Origin: Macrostomum lignano
Lineage: Eukaryota
DNA: 64,000 nt
Direction: 5' to 3'
NCBI GenBank assembly: GCA_002269645.1
Contig: NIVC01001233.1
Span: 1-64,000 of the forward strand
The position numbers and the translations under genes were made by a program. The stretch's first letter is position 1. Each line of letters opens with the position of its first letter. The notes beneath the pieces are model-generated. The model had not been told where the DNA came from and did no database searches. It saw only the letters and a list, made by a program, of their open reading frames with translations. This document shows positions 4,833 to 33,806 of this stretch, one piece after another.

Positions 4833-4897
<65 letters not shown>

Positions 4898-5900: not shown

Positions 5901-5986
5901 TCCACTGACATGGGTTATGATACAAATAGCTTGGGTTTCATGTGGCTTGGGTTTTGTGTGGCTTGAGTTCCAGTTTAGACAAAATC

Positions 5987-6376: not shown

Positions 6377-6429
6377 GTGATTCAGACAAAACCCATCAAG
6401 CACACAGAAAAGCCACAACAAGATATCAA

Positions 6430-9220: not shown

Positions 9221-9364
9221 AGGGGTGAGGAAGGGGGGGGGCGATTTGGAAGAGACAGGAGAGAAGGTCGGAAAGCATGCTTCATCCTATATTAATAATA
9301 GAAAAGCATGCTTTCCGACCTTCTCTCCTGTCTCTTCCAAATCGCCCCCCCTTCCTCACCCCTT
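9221..9364. other. Near-perfect inverted repeat (arms ~60 bp, AT-rich loop ~20 nt)
   Basis: Arms 9221-9282 and 9304-9364 are reverse complements except for the G9/C7 run length. Confidence 0.9.
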
Positions 9365-10028
9365 TGAGAGGCCGACTATATTAGTACGTCAAGACCAAAT
9401 GAGCCATGCCTATAGCTAGAATCGCGAATAAAAAAAGTAGTTGCGCTGCACTGCATCGCTAAAAATTAACCGGTGATATTTAATATTTAATATTTAGCAT
9501 TTTAATTGTGAGCCATTCAGTCAAGACTTCTCATTTGATAGCAGCAGTATATAATTTGATCTTTCCCAAAGACATGGCCGAAAAAGGTAAGCCAGTTTAT
9601 CCACCGCCACCAACCACCGTGAGAACTGGCTCACTGCACTCACGTTTCACTTAGCGAATCAGTATCACACCTTAGTGAGACTACTGTATATATTTTTAGC
9701 ATGTGGATATAGGGTCGGAGAATGTATTCTACTATTACATTATCATGCAAAATCCTATATTGAAGCTTCGGCTACAGAAAAGTACATCTCTTCAATTAGC
9801 GCTGTGCACAGCAGTCATGGCGCTCTTAGCTGGTGAATTCTTACATTACATAATTAAAGTTGCTTTGAATTGATACCGGATCGTCAGCCCTGAAGTGCAT
9901 GACATGGTTTCAAATTTGATTCTTAAAAATGATTGATAAATTGATCGACTGAGTTTATTCAATCAACTGTAAGTCTCACCTACAGCTTAGCTGCTCAAAG
10001 GTTGACGTCGAGCAGGAAAACTCAGCGG

Positions 10029-10134
10029 TTTAAATAGGGGCCAACTGACCCTAAATTTGTTATAGTGGAACACGTCGATTCTGATTGGCTGAGCCAATTT
10101 GTTAAAACGCTCGTCAACTTTTCTGATTGGCTGA
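10029..10134 (-). promoter_or_regulatory. Candidate promoter of PH-FYVE gene A (CCAAT boxes + TATA-like element)
   Basis: TCAGCCAATCAG at 10081-10092 and 10123-10134, TATTTAAA at 10029-10036, then a donor tag|GTGAGA at 9979. This implies a short non-coding first exon; the assignment to gene A is inference. Confidence 0.5.
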
Positions 10135-10805
10135 GCTTGTTGCTATACCATAAATTCAAGTGCCACAGAACACAAACACAATTTAAATGGCAACTGTGGT
10201 TAAGCCGGAGTACAAAATCCCCATACACACTTAATTATATATAGATATCGCTACACTTCTAACGATTTTATTCATTATAAATTGGTTGCCATAGCAATTT
10301 GTGTTAGCATGACTTCAATATATAGATATAATGAGCGCAAGTGTGGTAAAGATGGTTACAGTCTGGGATAATATCTGTAATAATTTTACCCAAACAATAC
10401 GTAATAAATAATAATGTCAAATATGAATTGGCCAGCTAATCTGAGCTCTTCAAGTTTGTTAAATTTAACAGAATTTCATTCGCATTTTTGAGTGCACAAA
10501 AAATTCACCAACAAGCGCCATTTTTAGGTCACTAAAAGGTTTGAGGGGGGCTCTGGGATGTTTGACATTTAATAACTAATGATCCAGAAAGGCGTTACAG
10601 ATGAAAACAAAGAAACTGCGCCATTCTATTATAAACACAAAAATTAATTTATATATATAATACGATTTCTCATAGGATACGGGTTGAAGCAATGCGACAA
10701 AGATGATGCTGCTTGCTAATGTTGTGCATTATACTTCCACTTGACCGGTTCATTATTCATCCAAACAGTCCTGTAAGAAAGGAATTACAGACAACAGACA
10801 GTGAG

Positions 10806-12756: not shown

Positions 12757-12887
12757 TTATGCAAGCTGCAAGACCAAGTGAGTTATTGGAAATGGCAAAA
12801 ATTAAGGCAATGACAGCAAGCAACGAGGCAAACAGTCATGCACAAGGTCAATATTGGACCACAACCTCGTCAACCCAGGAATCAAAT

Positions 12888-13228
12888 GGCCTGTCAACTT
12901 GAGCTCATAAAGTGGAGTCTGAGTAACCTATCTATACAAATGATTTGTGATTTTTGCTCACAATGACACTAATAGCTAGGTTTTGCAAAAAGTGACAAAA
13001 ATTGGACTTGGGATAAATGAGAACAAGCAAGGGGGATAATTGTAGAGACTCTACTATATGAGCTCAAGTTAACATAATAGTACCTAATTATCCCCTTGCT
13101 TGTTCTCCCAAGTCTAATTCTTGTTGCTTTTTTGCCAAACTATTTTCTGGTGTCATTTGAACAGAATAACAATCATTTGTGTATATAGGTTACTTGAGCT
13201 CCACTATAAGAGCTTGAGTTGACATGCC
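12888..13228. mobile_element. Foldback/MITE-like element ~130 bp upstream of the CDC37 ATG
   Basis: 12888-13041 is an imperfect reverse complement of 13086-13228 (e.g. gaacaagcaagggggataatt / aattatccccttgcttgttc; gagtaacctat..acaaatgatt / aatcatttgt..ataggttact). Confidence 0.75.
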
Positions 13229-13714
13229 TTTTAACTTAAGCACTTGGGCTCTAAGAACTAACTCTAAGACAAGTTTATTGCAATTGTTATGGCTAAATAT
13301 TGGCCACTCAATATTAGACTTAAATATTATTGAAATCCTTGATTTCAGGCAAAAGAGGAGAGAGATAAAACAATAGAAATGAATAAATGTTGCTAGTTTT
13401 TTATAATTTGTGAGCCTAGACGAAGTTTTAACTCTCTAAGGTTGGGACTCAAGCAATATATTTTTTATATTTTTTATATATCAAGCAATCACATTTTGTG
13501 ATTGGAATGGTAGCTAGGAGCTAAAGTTAAGAAAAATGCAGTCCCAGCCATTTTTGTATAATAAATAAATAATAAATAAATGAAATACCATTATTGAATG
13601 AAAAGTTAAACTGTTGCTTGCATTCTTTACTTCACTCATTTTAATATAGGCCTAATAATAAAACAATATAGAGTAAACAATAGTATAGTAAATAATAGTT
13701 TTTTTATTAGAGGC

Positions 13715-14040
13715 AGGGGGTTGTGTGCACCCTGGCGCACTTTAAGCGACATTGTTGCACAACTGGTGAGAGGCATTACTGCCCATTCCGCCAACTCCAC
13801 TGAGCAAGCATACAAGCGCGCGGATACATATGCAGGCACACAATCACACAGGAATCCACAGTGGCCCTAACTTTATTTTATCATTAGGCATGTATACTTT
13901 ACTGTGCCTTGGGGGGTTGTCTCTCAAGGCCGTTAATTGCACGAGCAGAGCCAAGCCGAGATTCTAATTCAGCCCCAAATTAATGTGACTGCACTTGGAA
14001 TCAAGCCTAGGTTGCTGGTACACCAGAGCAGCTGCACTAC
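13715..14040 (-). mobile_element. SINE family 2 copy
   Basis: Degenerate tRNA-like head at ~13990-14050 and the shared body (tgtgccttggggggttg, aggcatgta, cacaatcacacagg). Confidence 0.55.
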
Positions 14041-14337
14041 TGCTGGGCTATGGCCCCCTAAATAAATAAAATAATAGTTACTCTATAGTAAACAATAGAG
14101 AGTGATTGCCATTTGATTTTAAATTATTAAAAGTTATAGGAAGAGTAAAACAGGAAATTATTCATTAATTAGCCATGATATAGTTAGGCTATAAAGTTAG
14201 GCTATTAGGCTTTAGACAACCAGGGTCATAGATAGATATGGATATAGACCATAATCAGGATTATGTCCACTATGCTCCAGAACATTTTTAGACAAAAATG
14301 TGTACTATGCCAATGTTACACTTATGAGTAGCCTACC

Positions 14338-14800
14338 CTCCCAAGTAAAATGCAGAATCTGCAATGGAATTGGAATAGAATAGCACAATAAAATTCAGAA
14401 TCTATAGGGCCTAGCAAAATGGTAAAATATAAAATCAACTGCATAATCCACTGGGCCTAACTTGAAGTAAAATGCAAAACATATAGTTTTGCCTATAGCA
14501 TTTTAACTGTATAAAAAAGATATTATAGGTTCTCTTGTGAATAATATGGCTAATAGGTATTGAAAATTATTATCAATTTCCTTTCTAGAAGTCTGGTAAA
14601 ATTTTGAAAGCTTTATTGTTATAAGATTATATATAATAGATCATAATGCACTTTAGCTAGGGGCCTACTTTGCATGTGTATTTTAGTTAAAGTTAATAGA
14701 TTCCATTGCTCATTCTGCATTTTACCATTCCACTACAGGTTCCGCATTTTAGCAAGCTATTTCATTCTGATTCTGCTGCAGATTCCTCATTTTACCAGGT
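14338..14800. mobile_element. Possible degenerate MITE
   Basis: gtaaaatgcagaatctgca near 14348 is mirrored by tgcagattcctcattttacc near 14778-14797, with internal sub-repeats of gtaaaatg/cattttac. Confidence 0.35.
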
Positions 14801-16099
14801 GCCACACTCAAGTCCTTAGTCCTAAGGCTTTTAAAAATATGTAGACTGACATATAGTCATTAGTCAATATGGCTTTCAGGCTTCAGGCCCCCTTCAGCCT
14901 ACTTCGTTGTCATATACAAAGCACTAGGTCTACTAACATCTTGCTTTTCTATTCTTTATTAGGCCTAGGCTCACATATGCCGTACCTGTAGCTGTAGGCT
15001 GTAGTATAGGCCTAACTGGCCTGCCCTGCCGCCTAGGGCCTAACTGAATAGACTGATCTCGTTTTATTCATTTTATACAAAATAAATGAGCTATCTCAGT
15101 GAGTAATCGCATAATTGTTTGCTTGTTGACTAGGGCCTACACAAAAAACTTCAAGACGTTCTAGAATAAACGACGCTTTTTTCGACGAACGATAACTATT
15201 AATTAATAACGTCTAGATCTATATACACGTTTGTTTTCCAATTTGCAGTCGTCACTGGTGAATATTCTAGAAAATTCTGCCAAAGAAAAATTTAAGAAAT
15301 TGCTTCAAAATCAAATCGTATTGTAAATAAACTAGTTTCTGTACATCGCTAGTCAATTTTAGTCCTTTCTTATTTTTATTACAACGCAGAGTTATTTCTT
15401 TGTTTTAATACTTACTGGTTAGTCTTAATTTGGAAATAGGAACTTTGGTGCCTTTGATCGTCGGTGCATTTTTTAGCGATAAGTTAACAGAAAACCAGCG
15501 CAAAAAAATTGTTTTTGTTCAGACTCTAAACAGAAAAAGGCCTTCACTGAAATTCCTCCAGCAAAGGGTCCTCCCCAGAAGGAATTAATAAAGAACGCTT
15601 CAATTTGAAAGCCAATTAATTAAGTTACATGTATCTAAGAGGTGGATCGACACGTGCTGGTGCTGACGCCACTTGAGACGGCGAAACTCAATAGATTAGC
15701 CTCATCCGGGCCTGAGTCCTCCTCAATGGCTACAATTATGAAAAAAACGGCAACCAACCACCCTCAACTAGCCTAGCCTCGCCCCCCCCCATAGCAACAT
15801 ATTACATCTGATCACGATTCGCATGCACAATTAGAAGAACTGCGACCCAAGTTGTTCCTCTTGCTTGCTTGCTCCTCTGCCGTTGCTAATTAACCAGCCA
15901 CCATTCTTGAGCACCATGCTGTAGGTCCATTGGACTTGACTTGACTTGACTTGACTTGGCTTTCTCGACTCGTCTCGTCTCTTCTGTCCTTGTAATGGCT
16001 ATAGTAAGAAAGGCCAGAGTTTGCTGAGACGAAAGGTGGAGCCCTGCTAGGTGGGCTGATCGATATTTATTTATTTTCAGACTATGAAATAAAATCACG

Positions 16100-19000
16100 C
16101 CACCAGAGTGAGGGGGTGGAGAATCGCCGCACTTGAAGTGCATGAATTGTACGCAAAGCCGATGTACAAGCGTCGCTTTCACAGGTCGCGAGTGGTGAAG
16201 ACTGGGGATTGTCTCATTGACCTGGCGTCCGAAGAGCAGGTTAGCTGGGGCGACTCCTGTCGAGCTGTGCGGCGTGCGCCGGTACGCGGCCAGGTATTCG
16301 TCGACAGCTGCCGTCCAGTCTTTGCCTTCGGTGACATCTGCGCGTATGGCTTTGTTGAGGCCCCTTGTTGCAGCGCTCGGTGGCTCCGTTAGCCTGCGGG
16401 TAGAGCGGCGTGATCCGACGATGGTGGACTCCTTGGTCTTTCAGGAAGCTGGTGAAATCCGAGGATGAGAAAGGCGGCCCGTTGTCGGTTGACACCTTGA
16501 GCGGCTGGCCGAAGATGCTAAACCACCGTCTGAGCACGCGTATGGTGGCGGCGGCCGTTGTGTCTGCCATAACTTCAACCAGCGGAAATCGAGAAAAGTG
16601 ATCGGTGCAGACGAGTAACGACTTTCCTTTGACGGGCCCTAGGAAGTCAAGGCCGAGATCGAGCCACGGCCCATCCGGCAGATCCGTCGGCTTCAAGGGC
16701 GTTGCCTTCGTAGTCGCCTCGCTGTTGCAGGCCGTGCAGCTGATGCAGGTGGCCACATGAGTCTCCACTGCCGAGCGCATGCCGGGCCACCACACCTTTG
16801 ACTGCAGGCGGTCTAGTGTCTTCCGCATGCCTTGGTGTCCTTGACAGGGCAGTTGAAGGCACCGGAACCGCAGCACCCCAGGCACGAACAGCTGGCTGCC
16901 GCGCAATAGGAGGCCATCGTGTTCCGACAGCTCGTGCCTGACGCCTCGGATGTCTTTTAGATCCGCTGCCAGTGCGAATGGCGCGGCATGCAGCCTGCAC
17001 TGTCGGGTCCTGCTTCGAAGCCGCCTTGATCGCTGATATGCTGAGAGACACCGGAGTCGCCGCCTGGATGACCATGGTAACGAACGCTGCGTCGGCCCGC
17101 TCGCCTCCGTTGTTTGGCGGCTGCGGTAGCGGTTGCCGGCTGAGCACGTCGGACGGGTTTCCGGCTCCGGGCTGGTAAACGACGCTGAAGGCAAGGTCTT
17201 GCAGTCGGAGAGCCATGTGTTCAATTCTGCGGCCGAGACCCATGCGGCCGAGATCCTGGGCTGAACATCGAGACGAGCGGTCTGTGGTCAGTTATGACTT
17301 TAAAGTGCTCACAGCCGCTGAGATAATGATGAAATTTTAGGCAGCCATACTTTACTGCGAGTGCCTCGCGCTCGGTCTGCGAGTACCGCTGCTCGGTGGC
17401 GCTGAGGCTGCGGCTCGCGTAGGCCACCGGTCGAATCGAACCATCAGGCTGCACTTGGGCTAGGATGACGCCGGCTCCGGTTGGACTGGCATCGACAATC
17501 AGCTGGGACTGCAGGTCTTTGCTGAAGAATGCCAGCGCCTGGCTACTGGCTATCGTGCGCTTGATGTCGATGAAAGCTGCTTCTTGATGGTCGCCCCACG
17601 TCCACTCTGCCCCGTGCTTTGTCAGATCTCGGAGCGGCCGTGCCCTGTCGGACAGGTTGCTAATGAAGCGAGCGACAAAGGTGACGAGGCTGACCTCGGT
17701 AGCGTTGGTCGGTCTTTAGAAGCAGTTAATGGCCGCCACCTTCTCTGTGCTGGGATGGATTCCGGCTGCTGTGAGGCGCATGGCGAGGAAGTCGACTTCT
17801 TGCTGCGCGAACCTGCACTTCGCCCTGTTGAGAGTGATATTGTGGTCTCACAGCCGCTGCAGACAGTCGCGCAGTCGCTGGTTGTGCTCTTCGACACACT
17901 TGGCGTAGATGAGGATGTCGTCGTGTACCTAGCGCACGCCGGGAGTCCGCTCAGAACAGTCGTCATCACGCGCTGCAGGATTTCGGAGGCTGACGTATAG
18001 CCCATGCAGAGGCGCCTCAGTCGCATAAGGCCTAGTGGCGTTGAGAAGGTCAAGAGCTCCCTCGAATCTTCGGCCACCTCGATTTGATGAAAGGCCTTGG
18101 CGACATCTAACTCTGAGAAACATCTCGTCCGTAACCTCCTCAAATGTGGGAATCGGTTGCTTCTCGGGAATCACGAATTTGTTGACCTCGCGGAGATCCT
18201 GGGTGATGCGGATTCCCTTGTCCCTTGTCGTCCTTTGGAACAGCCACCATTCTTGAGCACCATGCTGCAGGTCCGTGGACACGCTCGATGATGCCCTGAG
18301 CAAGCTGCTCTTCCAGCTCTTTTCTGACGGCGTCTCTGAGGTGCACTGGCACGCGTGACGGTGCTTGGCATGTTGGCGTGGCTTCGGGACGCAGCTTGAT
18401 GGTAACGCGGACGCCTTTGACGCAGCCGATGCCGTGGAACCTATCCTCGAATTCGGTCAGGGCGCTTTGCAGCTGCGGGTTGTCGGTCGGGTGCTGGTCG
18501 TTGATGCTTCGTGACCCGGTGAGACCTGCCACTAATACGGGTTGCTTGTTGGCTCCTGGGCCGACCTGTAGCATGCCGAGCTCGGTGCTGGTCTGTCTTC
18601 CGATGATGGGGTGCAGCTGCTTTTTATGATGATGAAGTTCGGCTGCAGCTTGTGCCCGTTTGCCGACACCATCAGCCTGGCTTGTCCCTCAACGGCCAGC
18701 GGTTGGCTTGCGCCAAGTGGGAAAACCCTTGTGCTGCAGGGCTCGATCCTGGTGCCCGGGTTGCTGATCCGCCTGAAGGTGCACAGGTCGAGCACGTTGC
18801 AGCTCGCTCCGCTGTCGATGAGCGCCCTGACTGCGTGGCCGTTGATGCTGATGACGAACTTTGCGCTCCCGTTCTTGTCTTCCAGCGTGCAGAACACTTC
18901 CTCGTATGACTGGTCGGTCGGTTCGTCCGAGTTGTGGCCAAGTGCGTTGATGCGCGAACGGCTACTGAGACAAAGCCTTAGCGAGGTGGTTCATCTTGCC

Positions 19001-19135
19001 ACAGCTATCGCACTTCTTGCCCTGGGCCTTGTTGCAGCTTCGGTGTCCAGACTCTCCGCAGCGGATGCATTTGCTGTTAGTCTTTGGCGGCTCGCGGGCT
19101 GACCCACCTGGCTGCTTCCTGAGGGCAAGGCCGAT
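16100..19135 (-). mobile_element. Decayed Ty3/Gypsy retrotransposon internal region (gag C-terminus, protease, RT, RNase H, integrase) with frameshifts and stops
   Basis: Zinc knuckles CIRCGESGHRSC and CDSCGKMNH (~18975-19070); protease LIDSGASCN (~18800-18825); RT VHGPAAWCSRMVAVPK, ELDVAKAFHQI, TFSTPLG, *VHDDILIY; RNase H VDASPTG..VAYASRSL..YSQTEREALA..TDHRPL; integrase HQGM..WWPGM..CISC, LGLDFLGP, TDNGPPF, ERCN. Domain order PR-RT-RH-IN. Confidence 0.93.
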
Positions 19136-19555
19136 GTACATATAAATTGGGCTCGCGTGAGCACTACAGATGCTATCTCGTGTCAGACTGGGATCGAGAG
19201 AAGCAAGATCAGAGTGGTTGGAGAAACTGAGAGATCGATAGAACTCAAGAGATAAAGCCTCGCATCAAGTCAATGAGTTAGATCTACAGTACATAGACGA
19301 AAGCTGGGTCAAAAAGAGTACGAACCTATTTTTAATGAGAGCTGGCTGTCCCTTCATCCGCTGTCCTAGATTCTTTCTCTCACAATCTTTTGATATCCCC
19401 TATATCCCTCCCTGTGTACATTATCTCTCAATACCACAATGCTTTGTCATCTGGTCACGGCCTACTGTTCATTCTTCCTGTCATGTCACTTGACTCTTCA
19501 TTTGACTATATTTGACTGTCATTTGACTTCTGAAACTTTCAGAGTCACTACAACA
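19136..19555. mobile_element. Possible LTR (TGTACA...ACAACA) abutting the truncated gag
   Basis: About 420 bp bounded by TG..CA, beginning exactly where gag homology stops. No target-site duplication and no second copy were found in the window. Confidence 0.35.
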
Positions 19556-19639
19556 CTTTCGAACTAACTAATACTTGCACATAAGCATATAAAAGCCCTT
19601 AAGAAGTCCGTGACTTCGTTAACTGCCGTTTCATCAACT

Positions 19640-19860
19640 GGGTTGACGAAGTGACCAAAGATTTAGGGTTACCCTAGTGGTAGTTGACGAAGTGACCAAA
19701 GATTTAGGGTTACCCTAGTGGCAGTTGACGACGTGGCCAAAGATTTGGGGTTACCCTAGTGGCAGTTGACGACGTGGCCAAAGATTTGGGGTTACCCTAG
19801 TGGCAGTTGACGACGTGGCCAAAGATTTGGGGTTATTCTAGTGGCAGTTGACACAGTGAC
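19640..19860. repeat. 41-bp tandem repeat (gttgacgaagtgaccaaagatttagggttaccctagtgg(t/c)a)
   Basis: About 5 copies; a related unamplified sequence lies at 26870-26950. Confidence 0.88.
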
Positions 19861-20561
19861 CGACGGTGCTTATCTTATTATAGACTGTTTGACAAAGTGA
19901 CCAAGCGAGTGTCCCCTCCATTTGTGGATGAGTTGACGAAATGGCAGTTGACGCAATGACTAGGATCCGAAAAAATCTGTCTAGGATCCATTACGTCTAC
20001 ACTGAATGCAAGGACCTTGACTAAATTTTGTCCTTTAGGTTTCTGCGCTTTATACAACAGCGTGAGTTCGAATGTTCCTTTTCGAGCTACAGTCCAGAGT
20101 GCGACACATTACTCATAAATTCTCGCCGTTCTACTTTTTAATTTCATTGTGTTTACAACCTGAAGCAAAACACCTATTTTTTGGACGTTATTTCAAACAA
20201 CCAAAAAACGGAATTTCTCTAAGTAACAACCTTGTAAAATGAATTGCCGACAAGCGTATCATCTCTCATCATTGGCATACAGTTTCGAGGGCATTCGCAT
20301 TCTTGCTTGTTTTTGGGGGGTAGAGCGAAGAACGCGGACCATCTTTTACTTTGTGGCAGGCCTGTCTGTCTAGCCCTCGCCCACGCTTAATAGCATGTCA
20401 ACTATTACTTCAATTGGGGGAGGGGCAATGCCACACTTGCTTGGCTATAAATATACCGCTCTGCAATCAATCCTCCATCCCGCTAAAAACGAGAGTATTA
20501 CCCAAAATTCGTGCTGCTACCTGTCGATAGACTAAGAATTACAGCCATATCAAATACAGTC

Positions 20562-21412
20562 ATGAGTTCATTTCCGTTGCTGAAGAATTGCACCGAAAGC
20601 CAACTGCAAATCCTCCGGGACATGTACGGCAGCGTCTGTCTGGAGGGCGGTTTCTGTCAGGTGACAATTAAAGCTTGAATAATTAGTGATAATCTAACAA
20701 TTATTACTCGCAGGGGAGTTGTAAGAACCCTGGCCCTTTCTGCTGACTCCTGAACACGTCATACATGCACACACGCTCACACAGGATGCACCACGGCCCT
20801 GCCTTTCTAATCGTCATGCAGGCATGTACACTCTGTGCCTTGGAGGTTGGCCCTCATGCTTGTGAATCGCTCAAAACCCCTGGCCAATTTTTCGTACTCA
20901 AAGCCTCAAATTAAGATGAGTGTGCACCGCGGAATCGAACCAGGGGTCGTGGTACGAGAGGCAGCTAGCAAATACCTTTACCTCTGAGCTGCTCCGGCAC
21001 CAAAAATTAGTGTTTTTTATCTGCTAACGGTAACTATCATATAATTGTCCAATTTCACTTGCATCATCGCCTTTAGGCTCTGACAAAAGTGAGAGTCTTC
21101 TGCCAGTGCCCGTCGGGCTGGACCGGGGACGTCTGTGACGAGCCCGACTACGTGCCCATGGTGGGCGCCAGCCTGTCTCAACCGACCCCGAGCGGCTGGC
21201 CGGTTCTGCTCATCCTGGCCGCTGCTGCTGTGCTGCTGGCCCTGCTGGCAGTGGCTTCCTTCGTAGCTGTTTCTATGGCAACTAAGCGACGCCGGCGGCA
21301 CATCGAACTGCTGGTAGCCAGCTCAACCAGCAGCCTGGAGAATGCGGGCAGCCACAATCTGCAATTCGATCAGCTCATTATCGGCGCTGAAGGCGCTCAG
21401 TTGAAGTCCTGA
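20562..21412 (+). CDS. EGF-domain single-pass membrane protein, copy 1; exons 20562-20660 and 21077-21412; 144 aa
   Basis: MSSFPLLKNCTESQLQILRDMYGSVCLEGGFCQ|ALTKVRVFCQCPSGWTGDVCDEPDYVPM, followed by a hydrophobic TM (VLLILAAAAVLLALLAVASFVAVSMA) and the basic stop-transfer KRRRR. Phase-0 GT-AG intron; TATA-like tataaata at ~20446. Confidence 0.85.
20712..21000 (-). mobile_element. tRNA-headed SINE family 2, best-preserved copy, inside the intron of EGF-TM copy 1
   Basis: On the minus strand: A box agctcagaggtaaagg, B box ggttcgattcc, then the body shared with three other copies. Confidence 0.72.
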
Positions 21413-22624
21413 ACTTTTTCTTTGCTTTTTACTGATGCATTGATATACAATATATGTATATATTGATGTATGTTGATATTTTTGGATTCCCTTTAAGATA
21501 ATAACAGATCAATGTGTGTTTCAAATCAAACATCCCATTTCGACAAATTGAGCCATGATACCAGACGTTCATTTAACAATATTTTTTCGACTTAGCATAT
21601 CTCGAACTTGCAACGAATATAATTATGCACTCTTGAAAAATAAAACATTGCAAAGTGTGCGGATTCCTTTCTATGCAATTGGTTTCGGCAGCACGGAACT
21701 GCGAATCGAATGCAGCTACTTTTTGCGTGCGAAGGCAGGTTTTTCCAGACAAGAGGCCATGCAATCGGGATTCGGCCAATCGACATACACTACTGCCTGC
21801 TGACATTCGAAAAGGCGTGCATCAATTGTTCATATTATCGGTAGACTCCAAAATACCCCTCCAAAATCATACAATGGTAAATTGTGTCCATGGTGGTGTT
21901 AGAAGTAGATAATAAGATAGAAGCTCGGTTCACTGGTGGGTTGGGCGTTGCTGCACTTGCGACTGGCGATTAAAATACATTTCAAACAGTACGGTATTTC
22001 TTAGAAACACACGCGGTAAAACAAACTGACAACGTGGATAACAGGCTGAAATAATTATCAAATTAAAATTTCAAAGCTTCCAGCAGCATAAAAATATGAC
22101 CTTAACAACCTTGTCAACCCACCTCAGACTGTAACTGTTCATGTGGAAACTGACGTCTTAATTGGAAAAATAACTTTTCTGCTTTGTAGCAGAATATGTT
22201 CTATATGCCCTACTGCCAGTAGTTAAATATTTTTTGTTATTAGCTTATTGCAATGCGCGTTTAATGCATGCCGCATAGCCCTAATATGCTAGAATGCTTA
22301 AGACTACTTACTCGGTGTCTTAATTCTGCTCATACACGCCATGCGTAACCAAGGGACCACTTTCATAGCCTCAGCCAAAGGTGTAAACACGGTGGGGGTG
22401 CTTGCTCAATTTTGATGATCTGTAACTCAAATGCTATTTTTAGTCCCGGCAGATTCGAAAAGCCCTTGAGCTCTCCTAAAGAGCTGGTAGCAAGTAATGC
22501 TTTGCCCTTGTGCAGTTAAACAGGCGATGCTATTGTGATGCATAAAAGAGGAGCTTACATCGCACAGACGTCAATCAGCGCACGGCAGCTTTAGTCAAGA
22601 ATAACTTAATTTTGGGCGCCCCGA

Positions 22625-22905
22625 TGTGGTGTCAGGGAGTATCTGTTGTGTCAGGGAGTGTCTGTGGTGTCAGGGAGTGTCTGTGGTGTCAGGGAGTGTC
22701 TGTGGTGTCAGGAAGTATCTGTGGTGTCCGGGAGTGTCTGTGGTGTCAGGGAGTGTCCGTTTGTGGTGTCAGGGAGTGTCTGTGGTGTCAGGGAGTGTCT
22801 GTGGTGTCAGGGAGTGTCTGTGGTGTCAGGGAGTGTCTGTGGTGTCAGGGAGTGTCTGTGGTGTCAGGGAGTGTCTGTGGTGTCAGGGAGTGTCTGCATG
22901 GTGTC
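22625..22905. repeat. 19-bp minisatellite (gtggtgtcagggagtgtct)
   Basis: About 14 copies. Confidence 0.93.
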
Positions 22906-23758
22906 AGAGAAGAGCCACTAGAAGACCCAATTTTGTAAAACAACAGGTCTCGAGAAAAATCTCTAGGACTCTGTAGCAATACGAGCGTACCGTGGCCAAT
23001 AAAATCAATGCTAAAAATCAGGGGTCAGCGAATCAGGGGTCCGGCCCGCGGGCCACATGCAGCCAGCAAAGCCTCTTTATCCAGCCCTCGGATCCTCTGA
23101 AGCTTCACAATAGCAATCCAGTCTGCTCAAGCTCCTTTCTCTCATCTCTCCTCTCTTCTTGTCTCCTCTCTCCTCTCTTTCTCTATTCTCTTCCTCTCTA
23201 CTCTTCTCCTTTCTCTCCTCTCTCCTCTCCTCTTGTCTTCTCTCTTCTCATTTATTCCGTCGCCTCCTCTCCTTTCTCCTATCTCTCTTCTCCCTTCTGT
23301 ATTCCCACTTCCTCTCTCCTCTACCTGGTCCGCAGTCATACGAGCTACGCTGGATTCTCTATCTGGCCTTGAGGTGAAACATTTTGCCGACCCCTTGCTA
23401 CAAATGAAAAACTATCAAAACCGAAACTTATGATTGTGCGTCGGCTCACAGCCAGCAGTAAATACATAGCGTGTCCAGCTTGCAGTACTTCTCTCACTCA
23501 TTACCCACCTGCTCAGCCACCCCCGCATTAGCGCATACACGTATTAAAGCAGCGCTCCTGAGCCTGCCGTCCATTCTATGCCCTATTCTATTCTAAGATT
23601 TACAACTAAAACAACTGTCATTTTGCGCCTCTCCTCCGCGCGTCAAGTTACTTCCATCTATACCCTTGACACGACAATAAACTTGATGAACCACAATACC
23701 GGGTAATTAAGCCCTGCTCAATCAAGAAAGAATCAATAAACAAGAAACGGTGCCAACA

Positions 23759-24556
23759 ATGCGAATGACGGTGCCACCGATCACGAACTGCACAGACCGG
23801 GAGCTGACGATACTCGTCGAGCTGTATGGCGGCTTGTGTCAGGAAGGCGGACATTGTCGGGTAAGGACTGCGCAGCTGCCTTAGAGTCCCTGTAAACTGG
23901 GAGTTGAAGGCAATCTACGAGTACAAGTACGACCCTTGAGGCAGAGTAGCTCAGTGGTAAATGCATCTGACTTTTTTTCTCGGCCACCCTTAATTTGGGT
24001 TTATCACACAAATATTGGCGTGGAGATTGCCGGGCAGTTCAACCCCTCGAGGAGTTACAAAGACATGTGCAGTACTTGAAGATGTAAAAGTCTGGATCAA
24101 AGTGTACTACTATGCTACACACCCTAATGAATCCGTGAACAAGTCAGTGGAATTGACATTCTGCTCATCTCCTCGCTAGCTGAGGGGCTAGCTACAGTCA
24201 TTTGTAAGCCAACTAGATAACCAAAGCAACCATGATAACCGATTCCAACCCTATCTTTATTCAAGTCGATTCCTCCGGGACGACTTTTCTGCCAGTGCCC
24301 CACCGGATGGACGGGTGACCTCTGCGACGAGCCGGACTACGTACCCATGGCCAGCTCCGGAGCCGGCCTGAGCGGCCTGCTCTCAATAGTCCTTGTTGCG
24401 GCCTTCCTGCTAGCTATCGTGCTGTTCATAGTTGCCGGGGTGGTCCTTTACCGGCGCAGTCTCAATCGTCACCGCCGTCGCCGACGCCACGAGCCTCAGA
24501 GGGCCGATAAAGCCGAGAGTGTCGCCGTCCTGCCCGTAGAGGAGAATGACACCTGA
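23759..24556 (+). CDS. EGF-domain single-pass membrane protein, copy 2; exons 23759-23860 and 24266-24556; 130 aa
   Basis: MRMTVPPITNCTDRELTILVELYGGLCQEGGHCR|SIPPGRLFCQCPTGWTGDLCDEPDYVPM..LLSIVLVAAFLLAIVLFIVAGVVLY-RRSLNRHRRRRR. Cys spacing and intron position (gtaagg..ttcaag) match copy 1. Confidence 0.83.
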
Positions 24557-25559
24557 CCTAATTGTTATTAATGTACAATCGATTTATCCTATGGCAGTCT
24601 ACAATATTTATCTCATCGCTTTTAGATGTTATTTTTGCAAGATTCTGTACTGATTTGACAGTTTGTATTTATATTATTTTCTGGCTCTTTTTGACTTTGG
24701 AACTCATATTTTACTGAAGTTTCTTTTTACCGTGACTTTTCTACGAGTACGTAAGCCCCGAGTTGCTTGATTTCACTTAGGCGGCCTCCATGTTTGAGTT
24801 CACTGCGGTACACAGCTATGCAAGTGCTGCTATCTTTCCCGTTTATCTTTTACTACGGGCAAACTTTTTTCTGTATATTGCAGTTTAGGGTGCTGCAAAA
24901 AAGTTTTCCAGTTAGAATTTCTCCTTCAGAAGGCCTGTTAATATCCCATGTGTTTGCTCTTTGAGAGCAATTCATCGACTTTAAAAGTAACACGAATTTG
25001 TTTTTCTAGTGAGGTCCCTGGCTTACTGTAACTTCTTCACGAAATATTCGCACTTACTCGAGTATCTCTGAATTTTGATTCTCTTTCTGCATACTGCCTT
25101 TACTTTACTAAACTCGACTGCATTGAGTAATATGGAGCTTGGTGATAGCATTCAAGTAAAATCGAAATTGGCTTTGACTTACGGTCTCATACCTTGTGCC
25201 CTACAAACTGTAAATTTATGAACCTCAGACGTGGGCACAGGCTCCAAGCTCGTCTGTTACAGACGTCGTCGAATGGCTCTGTCCATTGCCTGCATTCATG
25301 GCTTACTCAAGCAGTGCTTCAGACTGCGGGACCGATACTAACAATAAAGCCTAAGGTTTAACACCCTGAGAATTAAAGACAGGTTGGCGTAAGTCGTAAA
25401 GCTTCCTCTGGAAGGCGATAGCAGTGAAGCTTGCCACAAGCTCTACCGTGGCTCGAAAGGCTGTCAGCAGTCTAAGTGTTCAAAATTTTGAAGGACAGCA
25501 TCAGCGGAATAGTCTCAGAGAGCCTCGATGCGATTTTAGCAGTCTTCGGTCTCGATGCG

Positions 25560-26490
25560 CTACTTGGGCAGGGGACGTGACCAGGCTGCGGGTGAGCTGG
25601 CCAGCTCTTCCGAGGCGGACATTGAAATTTGGTGGCTCGCTTTGGAGTCCCACAGTCGGTGCACACTGATCAGGGTCGGAACTCTCGGAGTCGCAGCTGT
25701 GCAAGAGACGATGAGAGTACTGAAGATCGACAAGACTCGGACGACAGGCTACCACCCTGAAGGAGAAGGCGGTTGCGAACGGATGAACCGGACGCTGGTG
25801 CAGCTGCTGCGAGCATGGGTGAACGAGAATCAGCGAGACTGGGATCTTTATCTGCAGATTGCACTGATGGGCTACCGCACTTCAGTCTACATGTCGACTG
25901 GTCAGACATCTTCGGCCGGGAACTGCGGCTGCCACTGGACTTGGCATACGGAGGTTTGGCGCTGGATGCGCACCGTCCTTGTGAATGAGTGGCCGAGCTG
26001 CGGAGCCGGCGCGACAAAACTTGGAGGCAGCGCAACTGTGCCAGAAGGCAGCGTAAGACTGGAGGTGCCACGGCGAGGCATTCAGGGAGGACGATCTGGT
26101 CTGGCAGCACAATCAGGCGCTGAAGCGAGGCGAGAGTCGCAAATTTCATCGATGTTGGACTGGGCCTTGGCGCGTTAAAAAGCAGATCTCGGATGTCACC
26201 TACCGCATTCAGCCCGAGGCCAATGCACGAAAGCAAAGGGTCGTGCATTTTAATCGCCTGCAGCCCCTCAATTGCAGCCAGCGGCGCAACCGCACAACTC
26301 TGACGAGGACGACCTGAGATTTGACGGCGCCCCAGTCGGCGCCCCAGTCGGCGCCCCAGTCGGCGCCCCTGCTAATGTTCAAGCGCATTCAGAACAGCCT
26401 GTATTGTGTCGAAGTGAGAGGGCCCGTGCCCCACCAGAATTTTATGGTGAAGTGTATACTGACACTGACACTATTGACATTGCTTGAGTT
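25560..26490 (+). mobile_element. Decayed Ty3/Gypsy integrase remnant (different family from 16-19 kb)
   Basis: Frameshifted motifs FGVPQSVHTDQGRN, KTRTTGYHPEGEGGCERMNRTL, DWDLYL..ALMGYRTSV, FGRELRLPLDL, WTGPWRVKKQISDVTYRI, VVHFNRL. Confidence 0.85.
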
Positions 26491-27357
26491 TACTTTAATT
26501 TCTACTTTATTTTTATTTCACCCAAATATTCATTCGTTCAAGTAATCGATCAGAACTCGTCAAATTCATTTTCGCAATCTTTTTAAACATTAAAAAATTG
26601 CTGTTGAAGGTGAATGGAACACTTTTTTTCGAAAGTAGGAGAGCATTGTAAGATGGTTGATTGGTTGATTGCATGTCAACATGTCAACGAATACCTCATA
26701 ATCCAATGCCCGACACAAGCAGACATCCGGGCGGAGGTCCTCGGACCAAACCCGTCACTGTCCGTCATCGCAGACGGCTGCCGCGTGCTCGAGTACCTCC
26801 AGAGGATAGGGGCGCGTCTCCCGGACTAGCTCTGGCCGGGAACCACCACCACCACCACCACCACTGCCGTTTCGTTAACTGGGTTGATGAAGTGACCAAA
26901 CGAGTGGTTCCTTTCCATTTGTGGACGAGTTAGTTGACGAGATGGCAGTTGAAAAAAATAAACTAGGAGCAAAAAATCTGCAGACCCATTACGTCCACAC
27001 TGAATCTCGTCCCTTAGTTTCCGCGCTCACAACAGGGAGAGTTCCAATTTCGAGCTACCAGTCAAAAGTGCGACACTTACTCGCACATAAATCCTCATCT
27101 GATGTTAGTTCTTTTTCGATTACTTAACCTGAATCACCATTGTGATGCGAATGTGACTTGTACTTTTGCGTTTCAGAGTTGAGACCCTGAACTAAAAAAG
27201 CCAAACGCTGAAGTACTGACGCGGTTGAGAGAAAGAAAACAAAAATTAGCACCAAACCCTTTTTGATGTGCAGATGTTCGTCCCGAATCGGGGAAAACCG
27301 GCTGAGTCCGGTTTCCTCTTGCCCCTTGTGCCCCTCTCCGCCCCCTTGGCCTGGCCT

Positions 27358-27575
27358 CCAATATAGAGCTGGTTAGGTGACACCCTTGTGGCTTGCAGCC
27401 CTATAGGTATCATGGTCACTGCCTGATAGGAGACTCGCCCTCGGAGCCTTCCAGACTCATTCCAATATAGAGCTGGTTAGGTGACACCCTTGTGGCTTGC
27501 AGCCCTATAGGTATCATGGTCACTGCCTGATAGGAGACTCGCCCTCGGATACAAGCCTTCCAGACTCACTCCAAT
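27358..27575. repeat. ~105-bp direct tandem duplication
   Basis: ccaatatagagctggttaggtgacacc...gagactcgccctcgga starts at 27358 and 27462, with a partial third start at 27571. It lies inside a block (~27130-27935) absent from the homologous region upstream of EGF-TM copy 1. Confidence 0.85.
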
Positions 27576-28303
27576 ATTAAGCCATTTCCGAGACTTCAGA
27601 GTCTCCCCGCTCTCGGACCGCTTATCAGTAGTAACCCAAGCATTTTTCATTCCAATTCTTTTTTCGCGCACTTCCGGGACTTATCTGCTGGGTGGTGGCC
27701 TGAGTGGACTCTGTCCTAGCACCGTCCCTGATTCCACTTTTGGGTTGGCGGTGTCTTAGCCCATAGGCTTGGGTTAGTAGCTCCAATGCTCCATGCTCTC
27801 CCCAGAGTCCTGAGCTCTGGTTCCAATAGTGGCCTCTCGGGCTTAAAGCCCCCTGGTAGTATGGCCCACAGCTAGATCCATGCGGCAGAGCCCCCTAGGG
27901 CTGATCCGTGGGCAGCGCTTCTCCTCCCACCCCCGTTTAACAACAAGCAACCTTATTCGAGTTTTTTTGGGCTACTTTGTACAACACAGCTTGTAAAGTA
28001 AATTACTGACAAGCATATCTCTAATCATTCGCATATAGTTGCGTGGGCATTCGCACCGAGGGTAGGGCGAAGAACGCGGACTGGCGGCTTTTACTTTGTG
28101 GAAAATCTGTCTGTCTAGCCCTCGCCCACGCTTAATTAGCACAGTGTGAACTCTGTTACTTCAATTGGGGGCGGGAAAGTTTCACTGGCAAATATGTCAC
28201 TCTGCCATGCAATCCTCCATCCTGCTAAAAGCGAGAGCATTACTTAAACTTCGTGTCGCCACCTGTTGATGGACTAACAAGTGAAAGCCAACAAGCGCAA
28301 GTC

Positions 28304-28729
28304 ATGAGTACATTTACGCTGCTGAAGAATTGCACCGAAAGCCAACTGCAAATCCTCCGGGACATGTACGGCAGCGTCTGTCTGGAGGGCGGTTTCTGTC
28401 AGGTGAAAGTTTGCATAATCGGCCAGGCGCTGACAAAAGTGAGAGTCTTCTGCCAGTGCCCCTCGGGCTGGACCGGAGACGTCTGCGACGAGCCGGACTA
28501 CGTGCCCATGGTGGGCGCGAGCTCGGCGCGGACTATGAATAGCGAAACCGGACTTGGCTTCGGCTGGCTCATCTGTCTGGTGGTGACGGCAATGCTGCTT
28601 GCCCAGCTCTTTGCCGTCATCGTAATGCTGATTTTTAGCAGCCGTCGACGCGGTCTTGGATCGTTGAAAGGCGCCGAAGCCAACCAAAAACAGCCAACGG
28701 AAGCTTCGGCCCTGAGACTATGCAGATAG
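28304..28729 (+). CDS. EGF-domain single-pass membrane protein, copy 3; 141 aa unspliced or 133 aa if 28403-28426 is spliced
   Basis: The EGF module is identical in amino acids to copy 1, followed by a different TM (GWLICLVVTAMLLAQLFAVIVMLIF) and SSRRR. A 24-nt GT..AG segment sits at the homologous intron position. Confidence 0.85.
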   Translation: MSTFTLLKNCTESQLQILRDMYGSVCLEGGFCQVKVCIIGQALTKVRVFCQCPSGWTGDVCDEPDYVPMVGASSARTMNSETGLGFGWLICLVVTAMLLAQLFAVIVMLIFSSRRRGLGSLKGAEANQKQPTEASALRLCR

Positions 28730-30087: not shown

Positions 30088-30579
30088 ATGATGGTGCGCC
30101 GTGGCGCAAGCCATTTGAAGAGAAGCCGTGACGCAAAGAAAAGACGACTGGCCGAGTCTGCTGGAGAGCGCGATGCCCGTCTGGAAGAGCAGCGGCGGCG
30201 AGACGCCGAGCGCCGCGCTGTTGAAGACGAGGCTGAGCGGTTTGTCCGTCTGGAGGAACAGCGGCAGAGACAGGCTGAGTGTCGCGTTGCTGAAGACGAG
30301 GCTGAGCGGATTGCCCGTCTGGAGGAACAGCGGCAGAGACAGGCTGAGTGTCGCGTTGCTGAAGACGAGGCTGAGCGGATTGCCCGTCTGGAGGAACAGC
30401 GGCAGAGACAGGCTTTGTTTCGCGCTGCTGAAGACGAGGCTGAGCGGATTGCCCGTCTGGAGGAACAGCGGCAGAGACAGGCTGAGTTTCGCGCTGCTGA
30501 GGACGAGGCTGAGCGGATTACCCGTCTGGAAGAGCAGCGGCAGAGACAGGCTGATTGTCGGCGCGGTGAATCTGTATAA
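30088..30579 (+). pseudogene. Truncated Helitron ORF consisting only of 23-aa STPR-like repeats (163 aa)
   Basis: Repeats of EDEAERIARLEEQRQRQAECRVA. It has one unit fewer than the copy in Helitron 2 and stops at the deletion junction GESV*. Confidence 0.7.
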
Positions 30580-31590: not shown

Positions 31591-33806
31591 ATGATGGTGC
31601 GCCGTGGCGCAAGCCATTTGAAGAGAAGCCGTGACGCAAAGAAAAGACGACTGGCCGAGTCTGCTGGAGAGCGCGATGCCCGTCTGGAAGAGCAGCGGCG
31701 GCGAGACGCCGAGCGCCGCGCTGTTGAAGACGAGGCTGAGCGGTTTGTCCGTCTGGAGGAACAGCGGCAGAGACAGGCTGAATGTCGCGTTGCTGAAGAC
31801 GAGGCTGAGCGGATTGCCCGTCTGGAGGAACAGCGGCAGAGACAGGCTGAGTGTCGCGTTGCTGAAGACGAGGCTGAGCGGATTGCCCGTCTGGAGGAAC
31901 AGCGGCAGAGACAGGCTTTGTTTCGCGCTGCTGAAGACGAGGCTGAGCGGATTGCCCGTCTGGAGGAACAGCGGCAGAGACAGGCTTTGTTTCGCGCTGC
32001 TGAAGACGAGGCTGAGCGGATTGCCCGTCTGGAGGAACAGCGGCAGAGACAGGCTGAGTTTCGCGCTGCTGAGGACGAGGCTGAGCGGATTACCCGTCTG
32101 GAAGAGCAGCGGCAGAGACAGGCTGATTGTCGGCGGGGTGAATCTGTCACCAGGTTACCTTGTGTCGAATCTATTGTGCCCTTTAGTCAGTTGCAGGTCA
32201 ATACCACCATTGGCGATGGCAACTGCTTTTTTCATGCCGTGTGCGACCAGCTACGTGGCACACCGCATGAAACCGATGCCGCTACCCTTCGGCACGAGTT
32301 GGCCTGTCGTGCAGTTGAACTTTTGCCACAGTTGGTCGCGAATGGCATCATCGCGCCTGATTGCGCCGATGAGATTGCGAATTCCTCCTTTCAGGAAGGG
32401 GTTTATATTTCAGACGAAGTGGCAGCTCTGTTTAGTAGCTGCTTTGACATGGACCTGGTGATTTACCAGTCCAATGGTAATGTGCTGCAATATTTCAAGT
32501 GTGACAAGCAGCCTCCCAATGCCACTGTGTGTGTGCTCTTGAGTCACGAGCACTACGAGTCGCTCAGACTTCGACCGTCTCTGCAAGCTTCTTCAGGTGC
32601 AGAGTGTCCCAGGCCAATGGCAAGCGGCTCAAAGGCAGTGCCAGTTGACATCCACAGCTCATGTGCCGACATTGGAGCATCGGGTGATCATCGGTGAGTC
32701 TTCTTCATTTGTCTTTTTGATTTGAACTGCTGTCCTCACAACATGTCTTATTCCACTGTACTCACAGGCGTGCCGAGCCATTGCTGCCAGAGGCCCCGGC
32801 TCACCAGTGTGGACCAATGAACAACGCCTGCAATGACTGTGGCGCATTGTTTTGGGCCAAAGAGACGCGCAACTTCTGCTGCGCCAAGGGCAAGGTGAAG
32901 CTGCCCACCCGTACGATGCCGCAGGTCTTGGCAGATCTTTACACGGGGCAGCACCGACTCAGTGCAGAGTTCCTGGCCCACATCAGGAGCTACAATGCGG
33001 TGCTGCACCTCACATCTCTGGGTGTGAAGCTCAGAATGGTGCCTGGCTATAGTCCCAGCTTCATCATCAGCGGCCAGCTGCATCACAATATGGGGCCGCT
33101 GCTTGCCGACCCCTCAGCCGAGCCGCATGGCTGGCAGGTGTATTTTACTGACCGCGAATTGGAGAGCCGCCTGAGCCTCAGTCAGAGAGTGAAGCCGGAG
33201 CTGCTAAAGCTGCTGCAAACTCTGCTGCATCAATCCAACGGCTACGTGCAAAGCCTTCGAGCTGCTGTTCAGCGAATCAGTGGCGACCCTGAGCTGGGAG
33301 ATGCGCGAATTGTGATTCACCCGGACCGAAGACCAGCAGGGGAACACATTCGGTGAGTTTGTGGTGTCAAAATAAACTATGATGTATATATTGTATATAT
33401 ACATGATACAATATATAAAAATATAAAAATATGATTTTTCCTCAGGCGCTACAATCTTCCTTTGGCCAATGAGGTTGGCATTCTTATCGTTGGTGGCACA
33501 GAGGACGCAACGACAAATCGTGACGTTGTGATCCGACTGCGTGGTGGCCAAGTCCAGCGCATAGCCGAGACGCACCGGTCCTATGACCCTCTGGAGTACG
33601 TGCTGCTGTTCCCCAATGGCGAGGACGGCTGGCACCCGGAGCTGAAGATGGCGAATGGGCGGACGCTGACGCCCATGAAGTACTACGCCAGCGAAATCAT
33701 GGTGCGAGCTGGCCAGTTCAATGTGCTGCACCACGGCAGGCGTCTGTTCCAGCAGTACCTGGTGGACATGGCTGCCAAGATCGAGTCCGAGAGGCTGCTG
33801 TACGGT
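31591..33806 (+). pseudogene. Helitron RepHel N-terminal part: STPR-like repeats + OTU cysteine protease + Zn-binding CxxC..CC motif + pre-Rep region; exons 31591-32693, 32768-33352, 33446-~33806; truncated before the Rep motifs and helicase
   Basis: OTU motifs GDGNCFFHAV and HEHYESL; CNDCGALFWAKE..FCCAKGKVKLP; HIRSYNAVL; R|RYNLP..NEV; SYDPLEYVLLFPNGEDGW; LFQQYLVDMAAKIESERL. Two in-phase GT-AG introns of 74 and 93 nt. Confidence 0.9.

Follow-up and report, generated by a model that had tools for sequence, protein, structure and literature searches.

Three leaderless EGF-transmembrane genes of Macrostomum lignano as candidate members of a proposed flatworm ligand family

What kind of protein is encoded by a small gene that combines a single EGF-like module with a single transmembrane (TM) helix, starts without a signal peptide, and lacks the arginine expected just before the sixth cysteine of the module? 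Three such genes, called g1, g2, and g3 here, lie in the same orientation on the + strand between positions 20562 and 28729 of the window, i.e., the whole stretch of 64,000 nucleotides (nt) analyzed here, which is the beginning of contig NIVC01001233.1 (assembly GCA_002269645.1) of Macrostomum lignano, a regeneration and stem-cell model in which transgenesis is available. The answer we favor, tentatively, is that g1, g2, and possibly g3 code for membrane-anchored candidate ligands of the EGF receptor (EGFR) and form a divergent Macrostomum branch of a kind already known in flatworms. What ties them to EGFR ligands is architecture and structure, and sequence statistics do not establish the tie.

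Gene models, leaderless start, and paralogues

Complete coding sequences (CDSs) were obtained by splicing GT..AG introns, resulting in proteins of 144 (g1), 130 (g2), and 133 (g3) amino acids (aa) with the following layout:

20231-20561, + strand: g1 5' flank, 79% identical to 27990-28303, with a TATA-like box and an ATACAG acceptor-like site
20562-20660, + strand: g1 exon 1 CDS, aa 1-33, with Met, the NCT sequon at Cys1, the 15-residue first loop, Cys2, and Cys3; donor CAG/GTGACA
20661-21076, + strand: g1 intron, 416 nt, phase 0, one codon past Cys3, holding the dispersed repeat 20733-20896
21077-21412, + strand: g1 exon 2 CDS, aa 34-144 and stop, with Cys4-Cys6, DEPDYVPM, stalk, TM core at 21203-21259, KRRRRH, and tail
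23759-23860, + strand: g2 exon 1 CDS, aa 1-34; donor CGG/GTAAGG
23861-24265, + strand: g2 intron, 405 nt, phase 0
24266-24556, + strand: g2 exon 2 CDS, aa 35-130 and stop, with Cys4-Cys6, DEPDYVPM, ASSGAG stalk, TM core at 24377-24433, and RRSLNRHRRRRRH
27990-28303, + strand: g3 5' flank, homologous to that of g1, with a degraded TATA-like box (GCAAATATG)
28304-28402, + strand: g3 exon 1 CDS, its DNA 96% identical to g1 exon 1
28403-28426, + strand: g3 intron remnant, 24 nt, in frame, GT..AG retained
28427-28729, + strand: g3 exon 2 CDS, its first 96 nt 94% identical to g1; TM core at 28568-28624

The g2 donor (GTAAGG) fits the M. lignano consensus GT[G/A]AG (PMC8629364), and the AAG at 24263-24265 is the sole in-frame acceptor for g2 located 3' of a TAA. 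All three products share the pattern M-x(7-9)-N-C-T, then C-x15-C-x5-C-x9-C-x-C-x8-C-DEPDYVPM, followed by a stalk of 8-20 residues, one TM helix, an Arg/Lys cluster, and a tail of 30-45 aa. The hydrophobic segment spans at least 19 residues (Kyte-Doolittle value of 2.8-3.3 over 19 residues, TM hydropathy 2.8-3.7), and charges are asymmetric around it, with 4-5 Lys/Arg within the 15 aa after the TM helix vs. 0-2 before it. ErbB ligands have this architecture, in which one EGF module adjoins one TM helix on the outside and the cytoplasmic tail is short. The copies are mutually paralogous (tblastn E-values of 1e-14 to 1e-43 between them); no further copy or EGF-like exon was found in any frame of the 64-kb window, so, as far as this window goes, g1-g3 do not form the terminal exons of a bigger EGF-repeat gene. 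The Pfam models EGF (PF00008) and EGF_2 (PF07974) match Cys2-Cys6 only, with scores of 22.0-24.0 bits, the curated cut-offs being 21.5 and 22.1; the gathering threshold of PF00008 is passed by g1, g2, and g3 and that of PF07974 by g2 and g3, g1 (21.9) being just under.

With regard to the start of these proteins, no hydrophobic h-region was found at any g1-g3 N-terminus on the Kyte-Doolittle scale (top 10-residue hydrophobicity within the first 21 aa at most 0.6), and in-frame stops lie 51-78 nt 5' of the g1-g3 ATGs (12-78 nt for all five family ATGs). A TATA-like box, TATAAATA, can be read at 20446-20453, 109 nt 5' of the g1 ATG, and the ATACAG acceptor-like site lies 2 nt before that ATG; the M. 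lignano trans-splice acceptor motif is [T/C]TNCAG (PMC8629364). We infer a promoter role for this flank. As far as sequence can tell, the leaderless reading of g1-g3 is well supported, because of the upstream stops, the missing h-region, the g1 TATA-like box with its conserved flank, and the planarian relatives described below, which start alike.

An earlier reading of this DNA made from the letters alone (hereafter the sequence-only reading) had described three co-oriented genes of 130-144 aa sharing a Cys motif, a TM helix, and a basic tail; the spliced CDSs bear this out, the NCT sequon it placed at Cys1 is present in all three genes, and the signal peptide it found missing is missing by hydropathy and upstream in-frame stops alike. 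A larger EGF-repeat gene would have refuted it, and the window holds no other EGF-like exon, as said above. Its intron between Cys3 and Cys4 holds for g1 and g2, is down to a 24-nt remnant in g3, and is missing from the coding bodies of the two paralogues presented next.

We searched 1.84 billion representative proteins with HMMER and a profile of the three ectodomains, which returned many generic EGF matches. The sole protein aligned from the N-terminus through Cys6 is PAA62311.1 (P0012) from M. lignano (151 aa, E-value 2.8e-12), of which PAA55319.1 is a near-identical twin. These entries (BOX15_Mlig002914g1 and Mlig030020g1; UniProt A0A267ELE9 and A0A267E3A7) are deposited as “hypothetical” or “EGF-like domain-containing protein” and are uncharacterised; a literature search found no publications on their locus tags. 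The layout of PAA62311.1 is MSDYGVTNCT, x15, LEGGYC, RKIPPGKLYCQC, TM, RRHRQHR, and no intron interrupts its CDS (456 nt for 151 aa). After splicing, the g1 and g2 products are colinear with it and gap-free over the junction (CR/SIPPGRLFCQC in g2 vs. CRKIPPGKLYCQC in PAA62311.1), which validates the g1 and g2 exon junctions.

PAA62311.1 lies at 10001-10456 of locus L001 (NIVC01001952.1) and has a co-oriented paralogue 9 kb downstream at 18844-19352 (L001b, MTENCTAEEMAIHIEGRFDFPCQEGGFC..., 116-118 aa); tandem pairs or triplets, thus, recur in the family. The deposited model of L001b adds only Met-Asn upstream via a 3-nt first coding exon to a single open reading frame (ORF) body that is intronless, the one annotated intron following that exon. 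This 3-nt exon, ATG/GTGAGT (L001 18830-18850, 18990-19004), comes after GCGAGACTCAATG, a sequence similar to the M. lignano spliced leader in its 3' part (..GCGAAGACTCAATTTATTGCATG); the exon may be an artefact of mapping a leader-carrying transcript, in which case the mRNA would be trans-spliced at cag/AACATG. PAA62311.1, PAA55319.1, and L001b share with g1-g3 the Met, N-C-T at Cys1, C-x15/16-C-x5-C, C-x-C-x8-C, a [DT]-[ET]-P/x-D/C-[YF] motif after Cys6, one TM helix, a basic anchor, the lack of Arg before Cys6, and the co-oriented tandem arrangement. The Cys3-Cys4 spacing is x9 in PAA62311.1, as in g1-g3, and x13 in L001b. The paralogues reach ~41-46% identity to g1-g3 in the ectodomain and ~24-29% over full length, their tails differ, and their coding body is intronless, whereas g1 and g2 carry an intron after Cys3.

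The EGF module and its relatives in other animals

Proteins of the same design have been published in planarians. Barberán, Martín-Durán and Cebrià (2016; PMC4914847), whose survey required planarian sequences to be full length, classed Smed-egf-1 through Smed-egf-5 as putative EGF-type EGFR ligands and reported their expression in the gut, pharynx, and central nervous system. In its supplement, Smed-egf-3 (MERNCTADELLYEKDKTFCFHGNC...), Smed-egf-4 (MYKNCSITESLDEFGEKLC...), and Smed-egf-5 (MEVDCNPQESLYIDGGKYC...) are, like g1-g3, leaderless, with a single EGF module followed by a TM helix and a short tail, their Met lying 2-3 residues before Cys1. The sequon at Cys1 is N-C-T/S in Smed-egf-3 and -4, D-C-N in Smed-egf-5, and NCT in all five Macrostomum proteins; an acidic, Leu-rich, long first loop (NCTADELL.. 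in planarians, NCTAEE.. and NCTDREL.. in Macrostomum) and an aromatic/Asp/Pro motif after Cys6 are common to both sides. The marks of a leaderless flatworm group are, thus, found in g1-g3: a Met near Cys1 without signal peptide, and N-C-[TS] with a first loop of at least 13 residues. The spacings differ, since the three Smed proteins have a first loop of 13, C2-C3 of 4, and C3-C4 of 13-14, against a first loop of 15-16 in Macrostomum; the Smed proteins also keep the Arg (GKRC, HGRC) that the Macrostomum family lacks. The genes g1-g3 would be the Macrostomum counterparts of this planarian group.

Among the comparison proteins, the best score on the Macrostomum ectodomain profile (32 bits) belongs to a Mesocestoides corti protein (P0089, A0A5K3FNY3, 197 aa), which is leaderless and has an EGF core, CEEPDY right before the TM helix, and a basic anchor; it is without Cys1 and the first loop. 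It may be distantly related, or its gene model may be cut short at the N-terminus.

Outside flatworms, N-C-T at Cys1 together with first loops of 8-11 residues is seen in a bryozoan, two brachiopod, and a gastrotrich candidate ligand, all with signal peptides, in the same supplement (PMC4914847). This recurrence of the sequon and of a lengthened loop in spiralian candidates makes the Macrostomum module one end of a continuum and not a new module. Ligands of the Spitz/Keren type (Drosophila Spitz and the Priapulus, Owenia, Lineus, Membranipora, and Terebratalia candidates) have, like g1-g3, a single EGF module adjoining the TM helix; in several of the candidates Cys1 lies in N-C-T and the first loop counts 8-11 residues, a CPTGWTG.. 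motif is shared (Priapulus), and a run of small residues opens the TM segment both in g2 (ASSGAG) and in Spitz (ASIASGA). Unlike g1-g3, they have a signal peptide, an N-terminal Cys-Ser-Arg segment, and a long linker, and most of them keep the Arg. Neuregulins also have an EGF module adjoining the TM helix and enter the membrane without a cleaved signal peptide. They share with g1-g3 the CxNGGxC and CxCxxxFTGD motifs, and the Y-V-(P)-M-A-S following Cys6 in g1-g3 resembles Y-V-M-A-S in NRG1β; they differ from g1-g3 in C1-x7-C2, in C3-x10-13-C4, and in the Arg of GDRC. Similarity to NRG1 was considered as evidence of membership and rejected, as neuregulins reach ~23 bits on the family profile and unrelated generic EGF domains score higher.

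Structure prediction was run with AlphaFold2 (AF2). A first run on full-length g1 with a four-sequence alignment was too poor for use (predicted local distance difference test, pLDDT, of 56). The second run, on the g2 ectodomain with a 48-row alignment of family members and mostly generic EGF segments, gave a pLDDT of 75 overall and 81-86 over residues 11-60, with a helix at 13-23 between Cys1 and Cys2 (pLDDT ~85) and an EGF hairpin at 32-36 and 40-44. When this model was compared with the PDB by Foldseek, the top match was NRG1β bound to HER4 (3u7u; E-value 2e-3, target TM-score 0.70, 31% identity across 52 aligned columns), with heregulin-α next; the alignments cover 51-55 columns for Spitz, epiregulin, TGFα, and betacellulin and only 31-42 for Notch EGFs. 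NRG1 also has the best single-domain score in a profile search of the PDB. The hydrophobic moment of the first-loop helix is reached by 19-29% of shuffled sequences for g1 and g2 and is about zero in PAA62311.1. A Notch/Delta-type hEGF repeat is not what we see: there is one module per gene, with no additional EGF exon in the window. In the alignment we read no O-fucose (C2-x4-5-[ST]-C3) or O-glucose (C1-x-S-x-[PA]-C2) consensus, the residue before Cys3 being F, H, or Y and the first loop being without an O-glucose motif.

These comparisons bear on most of what the sequence-only reading had said about the family. It called the family undescribed, which does not hold, given the deposited PAA62311.1 and PAA55319.1 and the published Smed-egf-3, -4, and -5 of the same design; the sequon and long first loop it pointed out are likewise no mark of a new module, since other spiralian candidate ligands have N-C-T at Cys1 as well, with first loops of 8-11. 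The family is lineage-specific, as proposed, in that the profile search has so far found it only in flatworms. Departure from canonical ErbB ligands by an x15 first loop and a missing Arg before Cys6 is confirmed, and neuregulin-type ligands are, if weakly, the closest structural match in both Foldseek and the PDB profile search. As for the first loop as an amphipathic helix, the helix is predicted by AF2; amphipathicity fails the shuffle test and is absent from PAA62311.1.

Selection, history of g3, and competing readings

Over the 65 codons of the ectodomain, g1 and g3 differ by 7 synonymous and 2 non-synonymous changes, i.e., a ratio of non-synonymous to synonymous rates (dN/dS) of ~0.07. 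The probability of such a split under neutrality is ~6e-4 by our own binomial estimate from site counts. Between g1 and g2, dN is 0.28 and dS is saturated. The ectodomain is under purifying selection. A block common to g1 and g3 begins at about -330 nt, takes in exon 1, and ends 96 nt into exon 2, with a weaker match to about -670 nt; identity is 69-79% in the flanks vs. 94-96% in the coding parts of the ectodomain. Beyond this block, the DNA of stalk, TM helix, and tail is barely alignable (55% identity, z = 3.7), and the 3' flanks are essentially unrelated. Judged by this pattern of its DNA (window 19889-21172 vs. 26884-28522), g3 is a mosaic in which duplication or conversion of the 5' part is more recent than that of the 3' part, which suggests gene conversion or chimeric duplication with a breakpoint inside exon 2.

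The 24-nt remnant of g3 corresponds to a g1-type intron (20661-21076) minus an internal deletion of ~394 nt. It has no stop and is in frame, so that reading through it would insert VKVCIIGQ, hence a seventh Cys between Cys3 and Cys4. Since M. lignano introns average 1.1-1.4 kb (PMC5730564), the remnant is probably read through rather than spliced, and g3 may be impaired. The remnant resembles an intron loss by genomic deletion caught part-way; the PAA62311.1 CDS is, by contrast, intronless.

If g1-g3 are ligands, they would be small type III (N-out, C-in) membrane proteins in which the single TM helix and the 4-5 Arg/Lys that follow it act as a reverse signal anchor, the N-terminus of ~62-75 residues entering the lumen of the endoplasmic reticulum without a cleaved leader, as in neuregulins. 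The six Cys are predicted to form the disulfides of an EGF fold with an extra helix in the first loop, and the conserved Asn of N-C-T would be glycosylated. Displayed near the membrane, the module could act as a juxtacrine ligand or be shed by cleavage in the stalk or at the top of the TM helix. The most likely receptor would be one of the eight M. lignano EGFR-type receptors. In the 2016 survey, M. lignano is credited with 8 EGFRs and only 2 candidate ligands (PMC4914847), which makes EGFR the prime candidate receptor.

Several observations weigh against this reading. From the canonical spacing C-x7-C-x4-5-C-x10-13-C-x-C-x8-C, only the C2-C3, C4-C5, and C5-C6 intervals are retained; C1-C2 is 15-16 instead of ~7 and C3-C4 is 9 instead of 10-13 (x16 and x13 in L001b). 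The G-x-R-C signature has its Gly without its Arg, the Macrostomum forms being GDVC, GDLC, NDIC, and GDIC, with V (g1, g3), L (g2), or I (PAA62311.1, L001b) in place of Arg. One has to keep in mind that this Gly and Arg correspond to Gly39 and Arg41 of EGF, the contact to receptor domain III, and that Arg41 is a main receptor contact. The human, Drosophila, and C. elegans ligands listed in the supplement keep the Arg (PMC4914847). The C2-C6 core is generic, as unrelated multi-EGF proteins reach up to 36 bits per domain on the family profile, compared with 20-24 bits for NRG1, NRG4, and invertebrate candidate ligands, and every Foldseek E-value is above 1e-3, which is weak, as expected of a domain of ~50 residues. 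The family hidden Markov model, aligned from N-C-T, gives Smed-egf-3 18.4 bits with the TM helix and 5.6 bits for the ectodomain alone, Smed-egf-4 and -5 scoring lower still; with such weak similarity, homology to the planarian proteins rests on architecture. The planarian Smed-egf-1 to -5 have neither an RNA interference phenotype nor a demonstrated receptor (PMC4914847). Finally, the deposited M. lignano proteins do not include g1-g3, and word-indexed searches using g1 or a family profile of six sequences brought up only the two proteins that the query itself contained, with no transcript-derived copies of g1-g3.

Because of the missing Arg, a non-canonical receptor contact or a partner other than EGFR remains a serious alternative. 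The proteins could be leaderless EGF-TM surface proteins that are not EGFR ligands at all, their Arg-less, helix-bearing module binding another partner (adhesion, recognition, co-receptor, or a lineage-specific reproductive or epithelial role). We find this somewhat doubtful: it would explain the loss of the Arg contact in all five Macrostomum members, a core most like generic hEGF-type domains, cytoplasmic tails unconserved save for the basic cluster, and leaderless flatworm members without any functional link to EGFR, but the whole module aligns best with NRG1β, Spitz, and epiregulin and not with Notch-type EGFs, and the O-fucose and O-glucose sites of the Notch type are absent from the sequences. 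Small proteins made of a single EGF module and a TM helix are, moreover, mostly ErbB ligands. Membranipora, a published candidate ligand, is also without the Arg (GPQC; PMC4914847). Less probable still, and in our opinion unlikely, the Arg-less Macrostomum family would be a distinct class of membrane-anchored ligands in which a hydrophobic contact replaces the Arg-Asp salt bridge, the partners being either a subset of EGFRs without the matching Asp or a non-EGFR receptor; such a class, if real, would explain why more receptors (8) than ligands (2) have been reported for M. lignano. At the position of Asp355 of human EGFR, the partner of the ligand Arg, EGFR-4, EGFR-7, and EGFR-8 of M. lignano show Ile, Lys, and Glu, respectively, in a crude, ungapped domain III alignment anchored on a conserved Cys-Thr and made from text obtained by optical character recognition; this alignment is unreliable. 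These residues could be compatible with the Arg-less idea; they are far from proof and are a lead only.

Two further explanations deny the cluster, or parts of it, a function or a start of its own. Some or all copies, g3 foremost, may be silent or decaying duplicates in a transposon-rich region, leaving the cluster without present function. The seventh Cys added by the in-frame remnant, the degraded TATA-like box of g3, and a g3 3' half unrelated in DNA to g1 all speak for decay, as do the retrotransposon integrase fragments and tandem repeats between the genes and the absence of all three genes from the deposited proteins. We nevertheless hold it to be improbable, because the reading frame is unbroken in each of the three copies, none of which has lost a Cys, the sequon, the TM helix, or the basic anchor, the 7:2 synonymous/non-synonymous split between g1 and g3 is hard to reconcile with neutrality, and g1 and g2, with their canonical splice sites, have diverged under constraint. 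It is very improbable, on the other hand, that the ORFs are 3' ends of larger genes whose upstream exons supply a signal peptide or EGF repeats. The AG dinucleotides 2 nt 5' of the g1 and g3 ATGs would allow an upstream splice; against this stand the in-frame stops 51-78 nt upstream and the lack of any other EGF-like exon in the window, the presence in each gene of its own ATG at the same place relative to N-C-T, the TATA-like box 109 nt upstream in g1, and the deposited models of two M. lignano paralogues, from a genome annotated with the help of transcript assemblies (PMC5730564), and the full-length planarian sequences, which start alike.

What is already known is that planarian counterparts have been proposed as EGFR ligands and that M. 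lignano paralogues are deposited; what is new is the three undeposited genes and the loss of the Arg. Under either an EGFR or a non-EGFR reading, the finding extends prior knowledge and overturns none. Together with the PAA62311-type paralogues, g1-g3 add at least five candidate membrane-anchored ligands. Domain screens would easily miss such genes, because their Pfam scores are at threshold and because g1-g3 are absent from the deposited protein set. Should they act in EGFR signaling, they would offer ligand-receptor pairs for studies of neoblasts and tissue turnover as well as a natural experiment in doing without the “essential” Arg contact; if not, they would be an orphan family of small surface proteins.

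Genomic surroundings of the cluster

An ORF near the cluster encodes Cdc37, 98% identical to an M. lignano protein. The window aligns over 1260-16349 with NIVC01000352.1 of the same assembly (GCA_002269645.1) at 93-99.6% identity, the aligned locus ending at 16349, before g1; the two may be either haplotypes, homeologues, or products of assembly. About 6.3 kb present in the deposited contig (L002, 897-7232) are missing from the window at 15453/15454, a structural difference between haplotypes, homeologues, or assemblies, and this junction adjoins a retrotransposon integrase ORF (16241-17224, minus strand). Tandem repeats comprise a 19-nt unit, GGTGTCAGGGAGTGTCTGT, in at least 14 copies and a 41-nt unit upstream of g1; a CT-rich low-complexity tract and a 104-nt direct duplication upstream of g3 were also found. 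The repeat within the g1 intron (20733-20896) belongs to a family of ~110-175 nt, with copies at 238-402 (minus strand) and 40908-41019 showing 74-81% identity. Scans of the window for tRNAs (ARAGORN) and Rfam families found nothing, including in the tRNA-like stretches of the g1 and g2 introns.

Other features of the window are listed below:

16241-17224, - strand; 18962-19141, - strand; 25555-26178, + strand: retrotransposon remnants, namely ORFs resembling integrase and a zinc-knuckle gag-like ORF, of which one lies between g2 and g3
19601-19902; 22568-22951; 23132-23321; 27357-27549: intergenic repeats
30088-30579 and 31591-32697, + strand: duplicated ORF with an RLEEQRQRQAE coiled-coil-like repeat
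45551-47179, - strand: 542-aa intronless ORF with seven hydrophobic segments
52409-53348; 54721-55482; 59976-60617: long tandem repeats, both strands open in several frames

The longer copy of the RLEEQRQRQAE ORF carries an OTU-type cysteine-protease motif (DGNCFFHAV), and the pair is probably a repeated gene or element. The 542-aa ORF has the look of a rhodopsin-type G-protein-coupled receptor, and a gene-position index holds no exact product of it. The long tandem repeats are almost certainly not genes but satellite DNA; Cys-rich units of 23 aa (CSTAVPVCAALLCQCVQHCCASV) are one example.

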